NCBI GenBank assembly: GCA_950097015.1
Contig: CATNEN010000029.1
Coordinates: forward strand, 2,790,001 to 2,854,000
DNA from: Macrostomum hystrix
Lineage: Eukaryota; Animalia; Platyhelminthes
Length of the DNA stretch: 64,000 nucleotides
Reading direction: 5' to 3'
Shown one piece after another: positions 24,100 through 43,947 of the stretch. Each line of letters starts with the position of its first letter. The stretch's first letter is position 1. Made by a program: the position numbers and the translations under genes. The notes beneath the pieces were generated by a model. That model was given only the letters and a program-made list of their open reading frames with translations. It did no database searches and had not been told where the DNA came from.

Positions 24100-27000
24100 A
24101 TGAGTGCCAGTGAGAGTGAGTGCACTTATCATGGAGAGCAACAGTCAAGCCATTGTGGCTATTGTAATGGGAAGAAGAAAAATTCACGTTGCACTCATGG
24201 TAAGCAGGTATTTTTTGTTTCCTTGTCTCTTATATGCTCTCAAGGGAATGCTAGAATTCCAATCCCTTAAACATTTTTATAAGAATAGGCCTCATTAGCT
24301 ACAATTGACAAGTTTTTTAAGTATTTTTAAGTTAAAGACTTGAACTCAATTGGAATCGAATACTCTGTCCATTTTTAATTGACCGCTAAAGGGAAATGGC
24401 TAAGCAACGGCGAAAGTCGTTGAGGGAGTTCCTTAGCAACGGCGGAAGTCGTTGAGGGAGTTCCTTAGCAACGGCGGAAGTCGTTGAGGGAGTTCCTTAG
24501 CAACGGTGGAAGTCGTTGAGGGAGTTCCTTAGCAACGGCGGAAGTCGTTGAGGGAGTTCCTTAGCAACGGCGGAGGTCGTTGAGGGAATGCCTTAGTAAC
24601 AACAGAAGTCGTTGAGGGAGTCACTTAGTAACGGCGAAAGTTCCTTAGCAACCGTGGTGTTTGTTGTGGACTGCATTCTCTAGTTAAAGAAAAGAAAACT
24701 TATAAAAGTTAAAGACTTGAATTCAATTGAAAGTTAGTTTGAAAGGATTGCAGCTCAACATGAAGACTTAGCTGTTAGTAAAAGACAATTAATCAAACTA
24801 TTTTCAGGTGCCACATTTTCTACACTGACCACAGAGGACTATCAAAGCCTGATGTTTCGTGGATGGCGTCGGTAAGATTTCTATTGTAGTTGATTAGTTG
24901 GATTTCATTATCTAAGTAGAAAAAGTACATGCATAACTATGTGTACTTTTTTATTTTCAATTACACAGCTCTGGCGTCTATTGCTACAAGCCGCAGATGC
25001 GAGAGATCTGCTGCCCGCAGTACACAATTAGATGCGATGTTGGCCGCTACAAGCTTAGTCGGTCGCATCGGCGTGTTCTTCAACGAATGAATGAATTCTT
25101 GCGCACCGGTAGCAGGCCGAAAACTAACGGCACAGCTGCTTCTGCTTCAGCACAGGTGAATAACAGCAATGCTGAGGAATCGCGGCCTGCAATGTCTAAA
25201 GCGACTGCAGCTGCCCAAGCGCTAAAGGATTCTGGCAACAAGGCTGGCGCTATGGACGGCTCTGGAGACGCGGAATTGACACTCGATGGTGGAGTTGAAA
25301 CTGGCCGCGGACGGCTGCGGCTGGGCAAGGCTAGGCAGAAGCGTTGGGTCAGGTGAGTTTTCTGCGTCAGTGTTGGCTCTCTGGTGTGTCAGTGTTGGCT
25401 TACTGGTGTGTCAGTGTTGGCTCTCTGGTGTGTCAGTGTTGGCTCTCTGGTGTGTCAGTGTTGGCTCTCTGGTGTGTCAGTGTTGGCTCTCTGGTGTGTC
25501 AGTGTTGGCTCTCTGGTGTGTCAGTGTTGGCTCTCTGGTGTGTCAGTGTTGGCTTACTGGTGTGTCAGTGTTGGCTCTCTGGTGTGTCAGTGTTGGCTTA
25601 CTGGTGTGTCAGTGTTGGCTCTCTGGTGTGTCAGTGTTGGTTTACTGGTGTGTCAGTGTTGGTTTACTGGTGTGTCAAGTGTTGGCTTTTTTGTGTGTCA
25701 GGTCAATGTGAAGCTACAATGGGTGGGTCAATGTGAAGCTACAATTGGTGGGTCAATGTGAAGCTACAATGGGTGGGTCAATGTGAAGCTACAACTGGTG
25801 GGTCAATGTGAAGCTACAATGGGTGGGTCAATGTGAAGCTACAATGGGTGGGTCAATGTGAAGCTACAATTATTTATTACACAATTCCATCGAAATGCAT
25901 TGCTCAGACGCCTAGAGAAGCTTCGAGCCAAAGCTGCAGCCGACCCATCAGCCAGCCTGGAGTCAGTTCTGGCTGCTTATAGAGCTCGCCGAGCCGCCAG
26001 AGCCACCGCTAGGGCTCCAAAATCCTTGGAACAGTTGCTGCAGCAGCCGCAGCAGCCAGAGGATTGGAAGCATCGGCTCAGGGTTGTTCTACTGCCCAGC
26101 GCCAAGAAGGAATTCGACAGCCGCGCTGAGCACCCGCTCTACGAGCGTTACCAGATGGCTGTCCACGGAGACAGTCGGGCGGACTGCAGCCATTCACAAT
26201 TCCAACGGTTCCTGTGCAATTCGCCATTGGCCTACGCTAAGCGGGGCGATCGTTGGCTGGGCTCATTTCATCAGCAATACTGGCTAGAGCCGGAGGGCCG
26301 ATTAATTATGGTTGGCGTTATCGACGTATTGCCCGACTGCACATCGTCAGTGTACGTGTTCTACGATCCGGATTATGCCTGGCTTAATCTGGGCACCTAC
26401 GCTGCGCTAAAAGAAATTGAACTAACCAGAAAAATGGGTCTTCCCTACTACTGCATGGGCTATTACATACACGACTGCGTCAAGATGCGATACAAAGGCG
26501 CATTCGAGGGCTCCGAGCTGCTCTGTCCGGAGACCTACACTTGGCACTGTCTGCGGACAGTTTGCGTTCCCAAGCTGAACCTGGCCTCCTATTGCAGGTG
26601 AATAAATGGCTTGCCTGATAATCTTTCATTTCGATACATATCGGTTAAGAACTAATCAAGCTATATGAGGGCTATGAGAACCCTCTCTCTACTGTCCCCT
26701 CTCTCTAGTGAGGTCTCTCTAGTTTAAGCCTCTCTCTACTCTCTACTATCTCCTCTCTGTCTCCCTCTCTCCGCCCTCTCTCCGCCCCTCAATCCGCCCT
26801 CTCTCCGCCCCTCAATCCGCCCTCTCTCCGCCCTCTCTCTCGCCCCCCTCTCCGCCTCTTTCTCCGCCCCTCCACCCCTCTCTCTCCACCCCTCTCTCTC
26901 CACCCCTCTCTCTCCACCCCTCTCTCCACCCCTCTCTCTCCACCATCTTTCTCCGCCCCTCTCATCCCCCTCTCCGCCCCTCTCATCCCCCTCTCCGCCC

Positions 27001-32057: not shown

Positions 32058-32527
32058 GGCTGGCAGTGAAACGGAGAGTCAGGTGGAGGTAGACAGGGAG
32101 ACGGAGAGTCAGGTGGAGGTAGACAGTGAGACGGAGAGTCAGGCGGAGGTAGACAGTGAGACGGAGAGTCAGGTGGAGGTAGACGAGACGGAGAGTCAGG
32201 TGGAGGTAGACAGTGAGACGGAGAGTCAGGTGGAGGTAGACAGTGAGACGGAGAGTCAGGTGGAGGTAGACAGTGAGACGGAGAGTCAGGTGGAGGTAGA
32301 CAGTGAGACGGAGAGTCAGGTGGAGGTAGACAGTGAGACGGAGAGTCAGGTGGAGGTAGACAGTGAGACGGAGAGTCAGGTGGAGGTAGACAGTGAGACG
32401 GAGAGTCAGGTGGAGGTAGACAGTGAGACGGAGAGTCAGGTGGAGGTAGACAGTGAGACGGAGAGTCAGGCGGAGGTAGACAGTGAGACGGAGAGTCAGG
32501 TGGAGGTAGACAGTGAGACGGAGAGTC
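32058..32527. repeat. 30-bp minisatellite (GAGACGGAGAGTCAGGTGGAGGTAGACAGT)
   Basis: About 15 units; explains the ORFs ETESQVEVDS and LTLRLTVYLH. Confidence 0.96.
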
Positions 32528-32989: not shown

Positions 32990-33056
32990 TCAGCTTTCAC
33001 AACTCAGCATCATCTTGTCCAGCATGGGATCATACAGCATCCGCTTGTCCATTATG
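32990..33056 (-). other. Short diverged homolog of the peptide-precursor repeat (MDKRMLYDPMLDKMMLSCES*); possible exon or gene relic
   Basis: GACAAGCGGATGCTGTATGATCCCATGCTGGACAAGATGATGCTG aligns with the 30-bp unit at 34995-35450. Preceded by a candidate GTAAGT...AAG intron (33162-33057). Confidence 0.5.
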
Positions 33057-34640: not shown

Positions 34641-34994
34641 AGCTCCCTTGATATGGCATCATGCTTATGCTGTGCTTAAAGATCTTTAGTTAAAGAAAGA
34701 CAAAGTTAAGGACTACAAAAATTTGCAAGTCTGTCGCAGGCTTGACCTCTCGGCTAATATATTTCAACAGTGCGTTTTTGTGCGTGTGACTTCGCTTTCG
34801 GGAATCACAAGAGAACAGCGAAAACAATAGAGGCGCGGACTCTGCGGGATCAACAATGCTTATCAAAGCCGTCACTGGAGAGTCTATGTGAATTACAACT
34901 TAAAATAGGCAAATTTCCTCAATCACTAAGAGAGTTTTAATTGTCAATTTAACAGTTGCTCGCACCGATGTTACTGATTTCAGCAGATTGTCGT

Positions 34995-35619
34995 CTAGTC
35001 CAGCATGGGATCACGCAGCATCCTCTTGTCCAGCATGGGATCACGCAGCATCCTCTTGTCTAGCATGGGATCACGCAGCATCCTCTTGTCTAGCATGGGA
35101 TCACGCAGCATCCTCTTGTCTAGCATGGGATCACGCAGCATCCTCTTGTCTAGCATGGGATCACGCAGCATCCTCTTGTCTAGCATGGGATCACGCAGCA
35201 TCCTCTTGTCTAGCATGGGATCACGCAGCATCCTCTTGTCCAGCATGGGATCACGCAGCATCCTCTTGTCCAGCATGGGATCACGCAGCATCCTCTTGTC
35301 TAGCATGGGATCACGCAGCATCCTCTTGTCTAGCATGGGATCACGCAGCATCCTCTTGTCTAGCATGGGATCACGCAGCATCCTCTTGTCCAGCATGGGA
35401 TCACGCAGCATCCTCTTGTCTAGCATGGGATCACGCAGCATTCGCTTGTCGTATCCGTAATGACGAGCGTCACAAGTATGCAGCGTAACAATCGCTCCTA
35501 AAATAAACAGAGATGAAGAGGCCATGAGGAGTTATGTTGATGCAGGTTCTCTCGCTGGCTGGCAGCAACTTACCGATAGTCAGGAGCAGTAGGAAGGAAG
35601 GCAGCAGTCGGTGAACCAT
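34995..35619 (-). CDS. Secreted neuropeptide-precursor-like protein; exons 35574-35619 and 34995-35497; 182 aa: signal peptide + RHYGYD-KR + 15 x MLRDPMLD separated by KR
   Basis: Exon 1 (MVHRLLPSFLLLLTI G|gtaag) and a 76-nt intron ending tttattttag| give the signal peptide MVHRLLPSFLLLLTIGAIVTLHTCDA. 14 internal KR sites follow the first KR. Repeat variation is synonymous only (CTA/CTG Leu, CGA/AGG Arg). ATTAAA lies about 55 nt after the stop. Confidence 0.85.
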
Positions 35620-36329
35620 GACAATGCGTCGGTCTTTGAAGGAAATTATCAAACAGAGAATTCCGAAGACTAATGAGGAACCTGTCCGGCAGTGGAGGCT
35701 GAGCCGCAGTTGTTAAGTAGTTGGATCCGAGCCTAGCGTGGGAAAGTCAAGCTGTTGCCGAGCCACCAACAGGGCGTGTGTTATCTGTTAGTTCAGCGAT
35801 AAGGCTGTTGGTTTGAGGACTGCTAGCTTGCAGCTATAGAGGCGAGAACAAACAGTAAACTGCGACATGGGACCGGCTGCGGGCCGTGTTTAAATAATAG
35901 CCGACTGGGATGGGAATGGATCCCTGTGCCTAATGGGGATCTAAGCGTTATCAGCCAATGGTAAGCCAGCGCGCCAACTCATTGGTTAAGAAGCGCTCTG
36001 GACAGCATGTTAAATGAAGCGAGATGTCCTTGAAGACAATTGATCAAGTATACATGCTCGAATTTCGATTCTGCAGGAGGCAGGGAAGAATTTTGCCAAA
36101 ATTTATTTTAAAATTTCACTCAAAAGCTAAAGGAAACTTTAAAAAAACTTCATTGTTCGGAAAAAATCCTAGTGTAAGTGAACGTATGGGGAAACACAGC
36201 TTTTAATTTTTTTCAATTATTAAAAACAAAAAATGTGCAAAATTTTTCCAAGAGTGATTTTATCTTACAACTTTATTCGATTGCAAGTGCAGTGACGTGA
36301 GAGGTGAGATATGGGAAAGGCTTTTGAGT

Positions 36330-39300
36330 GACGGGAGAGAGGCTCTGGAGTGACGGGAGAGAGGCTCTGGAGTGATGGGAGAGAGGCTCTGGAGTGATGG
36401 GAGAGAGGCTCTGGAGTGATGGGAGAGAGGCTCTGGAGTGATGGGAGAGAGGCTCTGGAGTGATGGGAGAGAGGCTCTGGAGTGACGGGAGAGTGGCTCT
36501 GGAGTGATGGGAGAGAGGCTCTGGAGTGACGGGAGAGAGACTCTGGAGTGACGGGAGAGTGGCTCTGGAGTGACGGGAGAGTGGCTCTGGAGTGACGGGA
36601 GAGAGACTCTGGAGTGACGGGAGAGAGGCTCTGGAGTGATGGGAGAGTGGCTCTGGAGTGACGGGAGAGAGGCTCTGGAGTGACGGGAGAGAGGCTCTGG
36701 AGTGACGGGAGAGTGGCTCTGGAGTGACGGGAGAGAGACTCTGGAGTGACGGGAGAGTGGCTCTGGAGTGACGGGAGAGAGACTCTGGAGTGACGGGAGA
36801 GTGGCTCTGGAGTGACGGGAGAGTGGCTCTGGAGTGACGGGAGAGAGGCTCTGGAGTGACGGGAGAGAGGCTCTGGAGTGATGGGAGAGTGGCTCTGGAG
36901 TGACGGGAGAGAGACTCTGGAGTGACGGGAGAGTGGCTCTGGAGTGACGGGAGAGTGGCTCTGGAGTGACGGGAGAGAGGCTCTGGAGTGACGGGAGAGA
37001 GGCTCTCGAGTGATGGGAGAGAGGCTCTAGAGTGACGGGAGAGAGGCTCTCGAGTGATGGGAGAGAGGCTCTGGAGTGACGGGAGAGAGACTCTGGAGTG
37101 ACGGGAGAGTGGCTCTGGAGTGACGGGAGAGAGGCTCTCGAGTGATGGGAGAGAGACTCTGGAGTGACGGGAGAGAGACTCTGGAGTGATGGGAGAGAGG
37201 CTCTGGAGTGACGGGAGAGAGGCTCTGGAGTGATGGGAGAGTGGCTCTGGAGTGACGGGAGAGAGACTCTGGAGTGACGGGAGAGTGGCTCTGGAGTGAC
37301 GGGAGAGAGACTCTGGAGTGACGAGAGAGAGGCTCTGGAGTGACGGGAGAGTGGCTCTGGAGTGACGGGAGAGAGGCTCTCGAGTGATGGGAGAGAGGCT
37401 CTGGAGTGACGGGAGAGAGGCTCTGGAGTGATGGGAGAGTGGCTCTGGAGTGACGGGAGAGAGGCTCTGGAGTGACGGGAGAGAGGCTCTGGAGTGACGG
37501 GAGAGAGACTCTGGAGTGACGGGAGAGTGGCTCTGGAGTGACGGGAGAGAGACTCTGGAGTGACGAGAGAGAGGCTCTGGAGTGACGGGAGAGTGGCTCT
37601 GGAGTGACGGGAGAGAGGCTCTCGAGTGATGGGAGAGAGGCTCTGGAGTGACGGGAGAGAGGCTCTCGAGTGATGGGAGAGAGGCTCTAGAGTGACGGGA
37701 GAGAGGCTTTAGAGTGACGGGAGAGAGACTCTGGAGTGACGGGAGAGTGGCTCTGGAGTGACGGGAGAGAGGCTCTCGAGTGATGGGAGAGAGGCTCTGG
37801 AGTGACGGGAGAGAGACTCTGGAGTGATGGGAGAGAGGCTCTGGAGTGACGAGAGAGAGGCTCTGGAGTGATGGGAGAGAGGCTCTGGAGTGTCGAGAGA
37901 GAGGCTCTGGAGTGACGGGAGAGAGGCTCTGGAGTGACGGGAGAGAGGCTCTCGAGTGATGGGAGAGAGGCTCTAGAGTGACGGGAGAGAGACTCTGGAG
38001 TGACGGGAGAGTGGCTCTGGAGTGACGGGAGAGAGGCTCTCGAGTGATGGGAGAGAGGCTCTGGAGTGACGGGAGAGAGACTCTCGAGTGATGGGAGAGA
38101 GGCTCTAGAGTGACGGGAGAGAGACTCTCGAGTGATGGGAGAGAGGCTCTGGAGTGACGGGAGAGAGACTCTCGAGTGATGGGAGAGAGGCTCTAGAGTG
38201 ACGGGAGAGAGACTCTGGAGTGACGGGAGAGTGGCTCTGGAGTGACGGGAGAGAGGCTCTCGAGTGATGGGAGAGAGAGGCTCTGGAGTGACGAGAGAGA
38301 GGCTCTGGAGTGACGGGAGAGAGGCTCTGGAGTGACGGGAGAGTGGCTCTGGAGTGACGGGAGAGAGACTCTGGAGTGACGGGAGAGTGGCTCTGGAGTG
38401 ACGGGAGAGTGGCTCTGGAGTGACGGGAGAGAGGCTCTGGAGTGACGGGAGAGAGGCTCTGGAGTGATGGGAGAGTGGCTCTGGAGTGACGGGAGAGAGA
38501 CTCTGGAGTGACGGGAGAGTGGCTCTGGAGTGACGGGAGAGTGGCTCTGGAGTGACGGGAGAGAGGCTCTGGAGTGACGGGAGAGAGGCTCTCGAGTGAT
38601 GGGAGAGAGGCTCTAGAGTGACGGGAGAGAGGCTCTCGAGTGATGGGAGAGAGGCTCTGGAGTGACGGGAGAGAGACTCTGGAGTGACGGGAGAGTGGCT
38701 CTGGAGTGACGGGAGAGAGGCTCTCGAGTGATGGGAGAGAGACTCTGGAGTGACGGGAGAGAGACTCTGGAGTGATGGGAGAGAGGCTCTGGAGTGACGG
38801 GAGAGAGGCTCTGGAGTGATGGGAGAGTGGCTCTGGAGTGACGGGAGAGAGACTCTGGAGTGACGGGAGAGTGGCTCTGGAGTGACGGGAGAGAGACTCT
38901 GGAGTGACGAGAGAGAGGCTCTGGAGTGACGGGAGAGTGGCTCTGGAGTGACGGGAGAGAGGCTCTCGAGTGATGGGAGAGAGGCTCTGGAGTGACGGGA
39001 GAGAGGCTCTGGAGTGATGGGAGAGTGGCTCTGGAGTGACGGGAGAGAGGCTCTGGAGTGACGGGAGAGAGGCTCTGGAGTGACGGGAGAGAGACTCTGG
39101 AGTGACGGGAGAGTGGCTCTGGAGTGACGGGAGAGAGACTCTGGAGTGACGAGAGAGAGGCTCTGGAGTGACGGGAGAGTGGCTCTGGAGTGACGGGAGA
39201 GAGGCTCTCGAGTGATGGGAGAGAGGCTCTGGAGTGACGGGAGAGAGGCTCTCGAGTGATGGGAGAGAGGCTCTAGAGTGACGGGAGAGAGGCTTTAGAG

Positions 39301-42300
39301 TGACGGGAGAGAGACTCTGGAGTGACGGGAGAGTGGCTCTGGAGTGACGGGAGAGAGGCTCTCGAGTGATGGGAGAGAGGCTCTGGAGTGACGGGAGAGA
39401 GACTCTGGAGTGATGGGAGAGAGGCTCTGGAGTGACGAGAGAGAGGCTCTGGAGTGATGGGAGAGAGGCTCTGGAGTGTCGAGAGAGAGGCTCTGGAGTG
39501 ACGGGAGAGAGGCTCTGGAGTGACGGGAGAGAGGCTCTCGAGTGATGGGAGAGAGGCTCTAGAGTGACGGGAGAGAGACTCTGGAGTGACGGGAGAGTGG
39601 CTCTGGAGTGACGGGAGAGAGGCTCTCGAGTGATGGGAGAGAGGCTCTGGAGTGACGGGAGAGAGACTCTCGAGTGATGGGAGAGAGGCTCTAGAGTGAC
39701 GGGAGAGAGACTCTCGAGTGATGGGAGAGAGGCTCTGGAGTGACGGGAGAGAGACTCTCGAGTGATGGGAGAGAGGCTCTAGAGTGACGGGAGAGAGACT
39801 CTCGAGTGATGGGAGAGTGGCTCTGGAGTGACGGGAGAGAGGCTCTCGAGTGATGGGAGAGAGAGGCTCTGGAGTGACGAGAGAGAGGCTCTGGAGTGAC
39901 GGGAGAGAGGCTCTGGAGTGACGGGAGAGTGGCTCTGGAGTGACGGGAGAGAGACTCTGGAGTGACGGGAGAGAGGCTCTGGAGTGATGGGAGAGTGGCT
40001 CTGGAGTGACGGGAGAGAGGCTCTGGAGTGACGGGAGAGAGGCTCTGGAGTGACGGGAGAGTGGCTCTGGAGTGACGGGAGAGAGACTCTGGAGTGACGG
40101 GAGAGTGGCTCTGGAGTGACGGGAGAGAGACTCTGGAGTGACGGGAGAGTGGCTCTGGAGTGACGGGAGAGTGGCTCTGGAGTGACGGGAGAGAGGCTCT
40201 GGAGTGACGGGAGAGAGGCTCTGGAGTGATGGGAGAGTGGCTCTGGAGTGACGGGAGAGAGACTCTGGAGTGACGGGAGAGTGGCTCTGGAGTGACGGGA
40301 GAGTGGCTCTGGAGTGACGGGAGAGAGGCTCTGGAGTGACGGGAGAGAGGCTCTCGAGTGATGGGAGAGAGGCTCTAGAGTGACGGGAGAGAGGCTCTCG
40401 AGTGATGGGAGAGAGGCTCTGGAGTGACGGGAGAGAGACTCTGGAGTGACGGGAGAGTGGCTCTGGAGTGACGGGAGAGAGGCTCTCGAGTGATGGGAGA
40501 GAGACTCTGGAGTGACGGGAGAGAGACTCTGGAGTGATGGGAGAGAGGCTCTGGAGTGACGGGAGAGAGGCTCTGGAGTGATGGGAGAGTGGCTCTGGAG
40601 TGACGGGAGAGAGACTCTGGAGTGACGGGAGAGTGGCTCTGGAGTGACGGGAGAGAGACTCTGGAGTGACGAGAGAGAGGCTCTGGAGTGACGGGAGAGT
40701 GGCTCTGGAGTGACGGGAGAGAGGCTCTCGAGTGATGGGAGAGAGGCTCTGGAGTGACGGGAGAGAGGCTCTGGAGTGATGGGAGAGTGGCTCTGGAGTG
40801 ACGGGAGAGAGGCTCTGGAGTGACGGGAGAGAGGCTCTGGAGTGACGGGAGAGAGACTCTGGAGTGACGGGAGAGTGGCTCTGGAGTGACGGGAGAGAGA
40901 CTCTGGAGTGACGAGAGAGAGGCTCTGGAGTGACGGGAGAGTGGCTCTGGAGTGACGGGAGAGAGGCTCTCGAGTGATGGGAGAGAGGCTCTGGAGTGAC
41001 GGGAGAGAGGCTCTCGAGTGATGGGAGAGAGGCTCTAGAGTGACGGGAGAGAGGCTTTAGAGTGACGGGAGAGAGACTCTGGAGTGACGGGAGAGTGGCT
41101 CTGGAGTGACGGGAGAGAGGCTCTCGAGTGATGGGAGAGAGGCTCTGGAGTGACGGGAGAGAGACTCTGGAGTGATGGGAGAGAGGCTCTGGAGTGACGA
41201 GAGAGAGGCTCTGGAGTGATGGGAGAGAGGCTCTGGAGTGTCGAGAGAGAGGCTCTGGAGTGACGGGAGAGAGGCTCTGGAGTGACGGGAGAGAGGCTCT
41301 CGAGTGATGGGAGAGAGGCTCTAGAGTGACGGGAGAGAGACTCTGGAGTGACGGGAGAGTGGCTCTGGAGTGACGGGAGAGAGGCTCTCGAGTGATGGGA
41401 GAGAGGCTCTGGAGTGACGGGAGAGAGACTCTCGAGTGATGGGAGAGAGGCTCTAGAGTGACGGGAGAGAGACTCTCGAGTGATGGGAGAGAGGCTCTGG
41501 AGTGACGGGAGAGAGACTCTCGAGTGATGGGAGAGAGGCTCTAGAGTGACGGGAGAGAGACTCTGGAGTGACGGGAGAGTGGCTCTGGAGTGACGGGAGA
41601 GAGGCTCTCGAGTGATGGGAGAGAGAGGCTCTGGAGTGACGAGAGAGAGGCTCTGGAGTGACGGGAGAGAGGCTCTGGAGTGACGGGAGAGAGACTCTAG
41701 AGTGACGGGAGAGAGGCTCTGGAGTGACGGGAGAGAGGCTCTGGAGTGACGGGAGAGAGGCTCTAGAGTGACGGGAGAGAGACTCTGGAGTGACGGGAGA
41801 GAGGCTCTGGAGTGATGGGAGAGAGGCTCTGGAGTGACGGGAGAGAGACTCTGGAGTGACGGGAGAGAGGCTCTCGAGTGTTGGGAGAGAGGCTCTAGAG
41901 TGACGGGAGAGAGGCTCTAGAGTGACGGGAGAGAGACTCTGGAGTGACGGGAGAGTGGCTCTGGAGTGACGGGAGAGAGGCTCTCGAGTGATGGGAGAGA
42001 GGCTCTGGAGTGACGGGAGAGAGACTCTGGAGTGATGGGAGAGAGGCTCTGGAGTGACGAGAGAGAGGCTCTGGAGTGATGGGAGAGAGGCTCTGGAGTG
42101 TCGAGAGAGAGGCTCTGGAGTGACGGGAGAGAGGCTCTGGAGTGACGGGAGAGAGGCTCTCGAGTGATGGGAGAGAGGCTCTAGAGTGACGGGAGAGAGA
42201 CTCTGGAGTGACGGGAGAGTGGCTCTGGAGTGACGGGAGAGAGGCTCTCGAGTGATGGGAGAGAGGCTCTGGAGTGACGGGAGAGAGACTCTCGAGTGAT

Positions 42301-42948
42301 GGGAGAGAGGCTCTAGAGTGACGGGAGAGAGACTCTGGAGTGACGGGAGAGTGGCTCTGGAGTGACGGGAGAGAGGCTCTCGAGTGATGGGGGAGAGAGG
42401 CTCTGGAGTGACGGGAGAGAGGCTCTGGAGTGACGGGAGAGAGGCTCTGGAGTGACGGGAGAGAGACTCTAGAGTGACGGGAGAGAGGCTCTGGAGTGAC
42501 GGGAGAGAGGCTCTGGAGTGACGGGAGAGAGGCTCTGGAGTGACGGGAGAGAGGCTCTGGAGTGATGGGAGAGAGGCTCTGGAGTGATGGGAGAGAGACT
42601 CTGGAGTGATTGGAGAGAGACTCTGGAGTGACGGGAGAGAGGCTCTGGAGTGATGGGAGAGAGGCTCTGGAGTGACGGGAGAGAGACTCTGGAGTGACGG
42701 GAGAGAGGCTCTGGAGTGACGGGAGAGAGGCTCTGGAGTGACGGGAGAGAGGCTCTGGAGTGACGGGAGAGAGACTCTGGAGTGACGGGAGAGAGGCTCT
42801 GGAGTGACGGGAGAGTGGCTCTGGAGTGACGGGAGAGAGGCTCTGGAGTGACGGGAGAGAGGCTCTGGAGTGACGGGAGAGAGGCTCTGGAGTGACGGGA
42901 GAGAGGCTCTGGAGTGACGGGAGAGAGACTCTGGAGTGATGGGAGAGA
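36330..42948. repeat. 22-bp purine-rich satellite (GGAGTGACGGGAGAGAGGCTCT), about 300 units, with higher-order structure
   Basis: Direct periodicity; rare variants recur at 1586-bp and 1762-bp spacings. Confidence 0.98.
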
Positions 42949-43947
42949 GTGCAGATTATGGTCAAAAGGATTTCGAACAAAAAGATCAAGTGAAAAAAAG
43001 ATAAAAAATAAGAGGCATGAAAAAGGATAAAGAATAGGGAAAGGAATATCGATGCTAGAAAGATAAAAACAGCAAGTAGGAAAATAATGATAAAATAACG
43101 AAAACGGGAATAGAAACAGAATCACTGCCAGTTAAATAGCACAGGTGCGAATCAATATAAAACGATGGTTTTCAAGCCGAGAGAGGTCAAGCGGTTTTAA
43201 CAAGATGGACAAGCTAAATAAAACCTTATTGGTCAGACGTGCAGTCGAGTTTTTGCTATTTTTAGAATCCTAGGGCACGTGACCAACCGACACAGCCAAT
43301 CAGAATAAATCTGAATAGATGGAAGACAATTTTTTTGGGCGTAAGTCAAGAATCTACAGTATTAAACTAGCTTATAAAAACCTCACTCAGCTAGATTTCT
43401 TCGGCTTGAAAAGAATAAAAACAAGTGCTTAATAGAATAAATTATTACACGATTAAGCACAAGCGCATATTGGAACACGCTTGCACTGAGGGTTGCGGGA
43501 ACAAACCACACAGATTTAAGATCCCATTTACCCTGATATATGGGAATGAATTGTCGAGCTAAACCTAATCCCCAACAATGTATAACAGGATGAATCTACT
43601 GTTCATATCCTATATAGCTAATCAGAAAAACAAATATAAAAAATCACTTTACTTAGTGGAAGAGTATTTAAAGCAAAGACAACGTGTCAACAAACGGAAT
43701 TAAAAATAACAGTCATAATTATAATCATAACGATAAAAGATACAAAATTATTGAAAGAATTTCAAGGGCCTAGTGGAAAAGACCCCGATCAGTTATTTGA
43801 TTCTGAAAATCTCATTAAAAGTCATGGGATTGCAAGCAGTTATGACAGTGCAGTTAAGGCAGTGAACTTTAGTCCTCATTGAAACAAACTGATGCCCCGA
43901 TTAATCAGCAACATTAAACGTTCAACAGCCCGCGGTTCGTTTACGCT

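Follow-up and report, generated by a model that had tools for sequence, protein, structure and literature searches.

Tandem arrays fill much of the 64,000-nucleotide stretch of Macrostomum hystrix DNA analysed here (contig CATNEN010000029.1, positions 2,790,001 to 2,854,000 of assembly GCA_950097015.1; hereafter the window), and one of them, a 30-bp minisatellite, raises the question of whether it is a satellite at all or, as an initial annotation proposed, the coding exon of a neuropeptide precursor with 15 copies of the octapeptide MLRDPMLD set between Lys-Arg (KR) sites. Tandem arrays of at least 150 bp occupy 48.6% of the window, which contains 28 separate arrays of at least 250 bp with periods of 4-50 bp, several of them open in one to four frames. 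Because open frames are so frequent among these arrays, an open frame is in itself no evidence of coding here. The MLRDPMLD array is alone among the 28 in having a dibasic site in every unit. Our analyses demonstrate that this apparent 30-base satellite is in fact the principal exon of a genuine flatworm gene, which is both spliced and expressed. We regard it as likely that it is a two-exon Macrostomum gene for a 182-residue secreted prohormone-type precursor, spliced and coding as predicted.

The gene lies on the minus strand. Its 5' untranslated region (UTR) of about 215 nt (35620..35834), bounded by an approximate transcript start taken from the 5' ends of RNA contigs, contains no ATG, and the first ATG of the transcript (35619-35617) opens the coding frame in the context GTCATGG, which has G at both -3 and +4. 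The coding part of exon 1, evident from the sequence and from spliced contigs, is 46 nt long (35574..35619) and specifies MVHRLLPSFLLLLTI and supplies the first nucleotide of a GGA codon for Gly, which is split within the predicted signal peptide by a phase 1 intron of 76 nt (35498..35573, GTAAGT...TTTATTTTAG). Exon 2 (35497-34995, 503 nt) begins with the remainder of the putative signal peptide (..GAIVTLHTCDA, delimited by the -3/-1 rule), the spacer RHYGYD and the first KR (35442..35497). It continues with the 30-bp array of 15 MLRDPMLD units, 14 of them followed by KR (34998..35441), which Tandem Repeats Finder (TRF) called at 34994-35450 with a period of 30, 15.2 copies and 98% matches, and it closes with a TAG stop codon (34995..34997) at the position taken in the other units by the Lys codon AAG. 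A candidate poly(A) signal, ATTAAA, can be read 54 nt past the stop (34936..34941). After splicing, the coding sequence comprises 549 nt and 182 codons for amino acids, MVHRLLPSFLLLLTIGAIVTLHTCDA followed by RHYGYD-KR and then 15 x MLRDPMLD, with 15 KR sites in total, of which 14 separate units and one precedes the array. The strand is fixed because the intron reads GT..AG on the minus strand only, and two plus-strand open reading frames (ORFs) over the array (34988-35488 and 35005-35460) were rejected on that ground.

Evidence for transcription and splicing came from Logan contigs of four sequencing runs (X1, X2, X3 and X8), which were placed on 35400-36300, beside the long repeat. X1 and X2 belong to one study (P1, organism A) and X8 to another (P5, organism D, the species of the window, whose DNA runs contain a stretch close to the gene in full). 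In X1, X2 and X8, hence in three runs and two studies, contigs join 35574 directly to 35497 and skip exactly 76 nt, whose ends read CT..AC on the plus strand and GT..AG on the minus strand. The initial annotation had thus anticipated both the arrangement of a 46-nt exon, a 76-nt intron and a coding array, which the sequence bears out, and the 35574/35497 junction, which the contigs contain. No intron-containing contig was found among the runs examined and depth within the intron was zero. Depth was also zero upstream of ~35834, and contig 5' ends fell at 35810-35834 in all four runs. In X8, which is no larger than 47 Mb, the word depth was 227 on the unique parts of the exons and several thousand on collapsed repeat words; the mRNA is abundant in this run. 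Across RNA runs the words of the array were ~10-20 times deeper than those of the unique exon sequence, a ratio in keeping with the collapse of repeat words. At 35400-35450 in the array, each of the four runs additionally had several short contigs that matched at only 90-95%, and therefore other unit variants or further near-identical gene copies appear to be expressed. A separate set of X1 and X2 contigs at 36093-36300 adjoins a 6.6-kb satellite with a 22-bp period (36318-42949) and is distinct from the transcript of the peptide gene.

The predicted protein has the layout of a prohormone. Its N-terminus combines a basic n-region (Arg4) with a 17-residue hydrophobic core at residues 5-21, whose mean Kyte-Doolittle hydropathy over nine residues reaches 2.8, and the motif C-D-A satisfies the -3/-1 rule and predicts signal cleavage after Ala26. 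If the protein is processed as this layout suggests, signal peptidase would cut after Ala26 on entry to the secretory pathway, a PC2-type convertase would cut after every Lys-Arg, and an enzyme of the carboxypeptidase E type would trim the basic residues. Each precursor would then release 15 acidic octapeptides MLRDPMLD (isoelectric point (pI) 4.5, [M+H]+ 990.475) and one RHYGYD, and ~80% of the propeptide is predicted to become product. There is no Gly ahead of KR and therefore the peptides are not expected to be amidated. Both the signal peptide and the non-amidated, KR-flanked substrate layout for prohormone convertases that had been read from the DNA at the outset are consequently retained, the former on the strength of its n, h and c regions and the C-D-A motif. 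A Pfam search of the protein gave only a sub-threshold match to the periodicity of Extensin. The nearest clusters in a protein-language-model space, for the proteins of this gene and of the sister gene described below, were exclusively neuropeptide preprohormones (0.81-0.85), including those of MIP, tachykinin, allatostatin A, FLP, PBAN, TRH, PDH, DH31 and galanin, and are leads by the tool's own rating. An enzyme of the kind that such processing would involve has been studied in the genus, as Macrostomum lignano is reported to have a PC2 homologue in its nervous system and hatchlings die when this is knocked down (PMC4490696).

A phmmer search of 1.84 billion protein representatives returned 653 matches, among which the sole credible relative was a 'hypothetical protein' of M. 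lignano, BOX15_Mlig021643g1 (PAA84435.1, P0145), of 89 amino acids, with BOX15_Mlig009070g1/g2 (PAA77719.1, PAA79507.1; P0151) as its cluster mate. Nearly all the remaining matches (for example P0122, P0114, P0124, P0039 and P0025) were discarded as artefacts of period-10 repeats with E-values inflated by the repetition. A word-indexed protein search with the product of exon 2 produced no candidate, the same search with P0145 found P0145 itself only, and a degenerate pattern for one full unit had 0 matches in JGI metagenome contigs. Readings of the M. lignano genome (GCA_002269645.1) at three loci revealed arrays of ILRDPMID-KR with 10 units (L001:5001-5575), 12 units (L002:5001-5635) and 11 units (L003:5001-5605). 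These genomic arrays give proteins of 159-179 amino acids, whereas the deposited models have 89 and 99 amino acids and three to four copies of the peptide; the models evidently skip most of the array, because they hold 3-4 units against 10-12 in the genome. No protein model for the window gene was present in the databases searched. The proposal that repeat masking would hide such a gene agrees with this absence and with the collapse of the sister-gene models to 3-4 units.

Comparison of the two genes indicates where they have been conserved. In the M. lignano gene a first coding exon of 49 nt is followed by a phase-1 intron of 95 nt, which interrupts a GGA Gly codon midway through the signal peptide; intron phase, codon and place are the same as in the window gene. 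Their peptides, I-L-R-D-P-M-I-D in M. lignano and M-L-R-D-P-M-L-D in the window, are both followed by KR and identical at six of eight residues. The last site in M. lignano is KK, its arrays have 10-12 units compared with 15 in the window, and it has a longer pro-region (PEVEW...EFRND) and, at the C-terminus, a tail (SFTTDNQERND). In their signal, pro and tail regions the two genes are unalike, and conservation is confined to the peptide and KR, as would be predicted if nothing but the released peptide and its cleavage sites counted. Outside the array no nucleotide similarity was detected, bar a shared low-complexity stretch, rich in CT, at another place in the window. The flanks of the M. lignano loci have no similarity to the window, which has no acyltransferase neighbour, and the two loci are not syntenic. 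On the basis of the common peptide, the 30-bp coding unit and the position and phase of the intron, the sequences indicate that the two genes, whether as paralogues or as rearranged orthologues, belong to one small family, [M/I]-L-R-D-P-M-[L/I]-D.

The repeat units themselves differ between the two genes at seven of 30 nucleotides (77% identity), with five of the differences falling on third codon positions; Arg is encoded by CGT in the unit of one gene and by AGG in that of the other. Only two residues are replaced, both conservatively (M>I and L>I). Read in any of the remaining five frames, these differences alter three to six residues, and one of the two genes runs into stops. When seven random substitutions were made, two or fewer replacements with no stop resulted in 1.0% of 200,000 trials (P 0.010). 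Taken together, the unit comparison indicates that the frame of the repeat is under coding constraint. An earlier argument for the same conclusion, that all variation within the window array is synonymous in this frame, turned out to be true and of little use: the array has one variable column, unit position 21 at the third codon position of the second Leu (CTA x10 / CTG x4), and because there is only this one column the argument is nearly powerless alone.

How the array evolves may be judged from the four arrays together. In all of them the frequent variant is synonymous (CTA/CTG in the window, ATT/ATC in M. lignano), and replacements (L>R, P>L) are restricted to single units. Units are ~98% uniform within each array and 77% identical between the genes, and their numbers are 10, 11, 12 and 15. 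Within-gene uniformity and differences in unit number therefore have concerted evolution with copy-number change as their plain reading. In such a process unequal exchange would homogenise the array and shift the number of its units, and selection would hold the peptide and the cleavage sites. The suggestion that peptide copy number varies as a variable number tandem repeat (VNTR) thus receives indirect backing from the 10, 11 and 12 units in the three M. lignano copies.

As for what the product does, we favour somewhat the view that MLRDPMLD is an extracellular signal, either a neuropeptide or a peptide hormone, as the architecture of its precursor suggests. A number of points weigh against this view or against the gene model beneath it. 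The runs in which the transcript was found are labelled 'RNA?' or '?', and their RNA nature was deduced from the transcript-shaped coverage. Contigs do not span the array, and the figure of 15 copies in the mRNA is that of the genome. The signal peptide is a rule-based assignment and the neuropeptide label is drawn from architecture. Comparative support consists of one sister gene in the same genus, and the searches found no relative outside Macrostomum apart from one look-alike. Lastly, R-M-L-R in every unit constitutes a minimal R-x-x-R convertase motif, and therefore a shorter final product, DPMLD, is possible. The look-alike, P0079, is a 160-residue fragment from a marine eukaryote (Tara Oceans metatranscriptome ERR1712130) with eight KR-bounded octapeptides of the type YLRDDTIE; its pattern, x-L-R-D-(D/P)-x-(I/L)-(E/D)-KR, resembles that of the MLRDPMLD family through either homology or convergence.

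The alternative that fares best concerns the identity of the peptide, which might be a shortened member of the pedal-peptide/orcokinin family, of the type of the planarian ppp-1 and ppp-2. The precursors of Smed-ppp-1 and Smed-ppp-2 are small and have a signal peptide and tandem non-amidated peptides, such as RSFYDPIGGGLL and SYFDKIGSDLL, between KR or KRR sites (PMC2953531), and these peptides have been confirmed by mass spectrometry and are reduced after pc2 RNA interference (RNAi) (Collins et al. 2010, PMC2953531). In the annelid-type examples from Platynereis, pedal peptides are likewise multi-copy, non-amidated and dibasic-flanked (SFDSIGHSSNFAGLD, MLDEVGSSLL, VVDPIGSAL); copies of pedal-peptide-1 end in ..GLD before KR or KK, and MLDEVGSSLL and VVDPIGSAL belong to pedal-peptide-2 (PMC3890597). 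The window gene has in common with this family its multiple non-amidated peptides between dibasic sites, and the x-D-P-(I/L/M) core of its peptide matches ..YYDPIGGGLL of Smed-ppp-1 and the VVDPIGSAL variant of Platynereis pedal-peptide-2. The L-D ahead of the basic pair recalls the end of Platynereis pedal-peptide-1, and a relic unit in the window (described below) reads Y-D-P-M-L, which is nearer to YDPI.

These likenesses amount to a motif of three to four residues, and the remaining features differ. Smed-ppp peptides have 11-12 residues, a GGGLL or GSDLL tail and 5-8 non-identical copies, whereas the window peptide has eight residues, no Gly-rich tail, an Arg before Asp-Pro and 15 identical copies; the core is Y/F-D-P/K-I in the former and R-D-P-M in the latter. 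The Platynereis peptides (10-15 residues) have another middle and tail and few residues in common with MLRDPMLD. The motif that defines the pedal-peptide/orcokinin family, (aromatic/aliphatic)-D-x-(I/L) followed by a G/S stretch and a hydrophobic C-terminus in ~10-17 residues, is absent from MLRDPMLD apart from the D-P-(I/L/M) core: the position ahead of Asp has Arg and not an aromatic or aliphatic residue, and there is no G-x-x-L/F tail. Furthermore, no precursor of this kind was seen among the seven phmmer hits that were fetched, the 150 listed hits that were screened for motifs or the nearest atlas clusters, and there was no Pfam match. In phmmer only the M. lignano sister gene was credible, although homology between such short peptides is beyond the resolution of that method. 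Since the defining feature is wanting, we have not filed MLRDPMLD as a pedal peptide, and we consider membership of that family, in a shortened form, unlikely. The loose resemblance to pedal peptides pointed out in the initial annotation therefore holds for the D-P-(I/L/M) core and fails for the length, the G/S stretch, the tail and the aromatic residue. Classical multi-copy precursors, such as those of FMRFamide/FLP, allatostatin A, tachykinin and TRH, share the architecture and presumed processing of the window precursor and have no sequence relation to it. Most classical multi-copy neuropeptides are amidated, with a Gly before the basic pair.

If the window gene does not belong to a known family, it is of interest whether its own family has been described. 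MLRDPMLD, ILRDPMID, their sub-strings and the Mlig gene identifiers were not found in the searchable literature; the surveys of McVeigh et al. 2009 and Koziol et al. 2016 were outside that search and an earlier description there is possible. The claim that the family was unrecognised accordingly stands insofar as no searchable paper contains the peptide and has to be tempered insofar as a relative was already in GenBank as a mis-modelled 'hypothetical protein'. We propose tentatively, at somewhat less than even confidence, that [M/I]LRDPM[L/I]D may be an undescribed family of signalling peptides, so far confined to Macrostomum, whose dose per transcript evolves like a minisatellite (10, 11, 12 and 15 units at four loci), the arrays being homogenised gene by gene and kept in frame by selection in DNA that is locally about half tandem arrays. 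It may be part of a lineage-specific radiation of drastically shortened ppp genes.

An alternative of a different kind accepts the precursor as real and places its synthesis in non-neuronal glands (prostate or seminal fluid, adhesive, pharyngeal or epidermal), with peptides that act outside the body as a pheromone, mating factor or defence peptide. An abundant gland product would be compatible with the very high word depth seen in whole-animal runs of small size. In addition, KR-processed repeat precursors serve secreted non-neural peptides elsewhere, as in the alpha-factor of yeast. A role in defence is less readily reconciled with the peptide itself, which is short and acidic (pI 4.5), is neither amphipathic nor cationic, and in these respects is unlike antimicrobial peptides. 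In flatworms, neural prohormones are documented to combine a signal peptide with identical short KR-flanked peptides that account for ~80% of the propeptide (PMC2953531), and the nearest neighbours of the precursor in feature space are all neuropeptide precursors, which is a weak argument in the same direction. We judge a gland origin to be a little less probable than the pedal-peptide assignment.

A third alternative leaves the gene as described and changes its product: additional cleavage at R-x-x-R (in KR-ML-R, ahead of DPMLD) would yield the pentapeptide DPMLD (DPMID in M. lignano). Both genes retain the motif, as R-M-L-R and R-I-L-R respectively, and spiralian precursors are known to be cut at single basic residues that have another basic residue 3-6 positions upstream (PMC8557429). 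On the other hand, M/I-L is also conserved, which argues for its being part of the product, and the relic unit has Tyr in place of this Arg. Asp-Pro directly after the cut is, moreover, unusual for convertase sites. DPMLD as the final product is thus improbable in our estimation, and the octapeptide is preferred. That the locus is a transcribed satellite or non-coding RNA whose open frame, KR sites and leader arose by chance is barely credible, for although half of the window is tandem arrays in which open frames are common, and variation within the array offers one informative site, the transcript has a precise GT..AG intron, a first ATG that opens the frame and a leader like a signal peptide, and the frame, KR sites and intron phase are kept in a sister gene at 23% DNA divergence with two conservative replacements.

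Another 30-bp array, nearly equal in size and 2.5 kb off (32064-32527; 15.6 copies, 97%), has three open frames, one of them on the plus strand with the acidic repeat SETESQVEVD, has no dibasic sites or obvious leader and is probably a plain satellite. De novo birth of the peptide gene from a neighbouring satellite was considered and is unsupported, as its unit is by eye unlike other 30-bp consensus units, and it is also opposed by the occurrence of the same intron in a sister gene that has diverged. A relic of ~1.5 units lies on the same strand (minus) 1.95 kb downstream (32990..33052), is ~91% identical to the array and reads MDKR-MLYDPMLD-KM-MLSCES* (the asterisk being a stop). Its words were recovered at 1.00 and 0.88 in DNA runs of the window's species and at 0.00 in the RNA-type runs X8, X10 and X15, in which the main gene has high depth. 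This relic is probably an untranscribed leftover, not a second gene.

Two further features were noted on the plus strand of the window. A fragment of a rhodopsin-type G protein-coupled receptor (GPCR) at 10722-11759 matches Pfam 7tm_1 with an E of 6.6e-11, and a word search with this GPCR-like ORF found no relative, M. lignano proteins included. Exons of an arginyl-tRNA-protein transferase (ATE_N, ATE_C) are present at 24997-26601.

The architecture of the MLRDPMLD precursor is a textbook one, and our result is in that sense useful and not surprising. Macrostomum is a genetic model flatworm for transgenesis, regeneration and sexual selection, and to our knowledge its peptide-signalling repertoire is poorly catalogued. 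A strongly transcribed gene with no protein model, together with a relative deposited as a truncated 'hypothetical' protein, therefore means that tandem-repeat genes are being missed or mis-modelled in this genome. The four arrays, with 10 to 15 units, illustrate in a small and clean way how concerted evolution and changes in copy number act on a coding minisatellite, and MLRDPMLD offers a concrete and cheap target for functional and receptor work in these animals.

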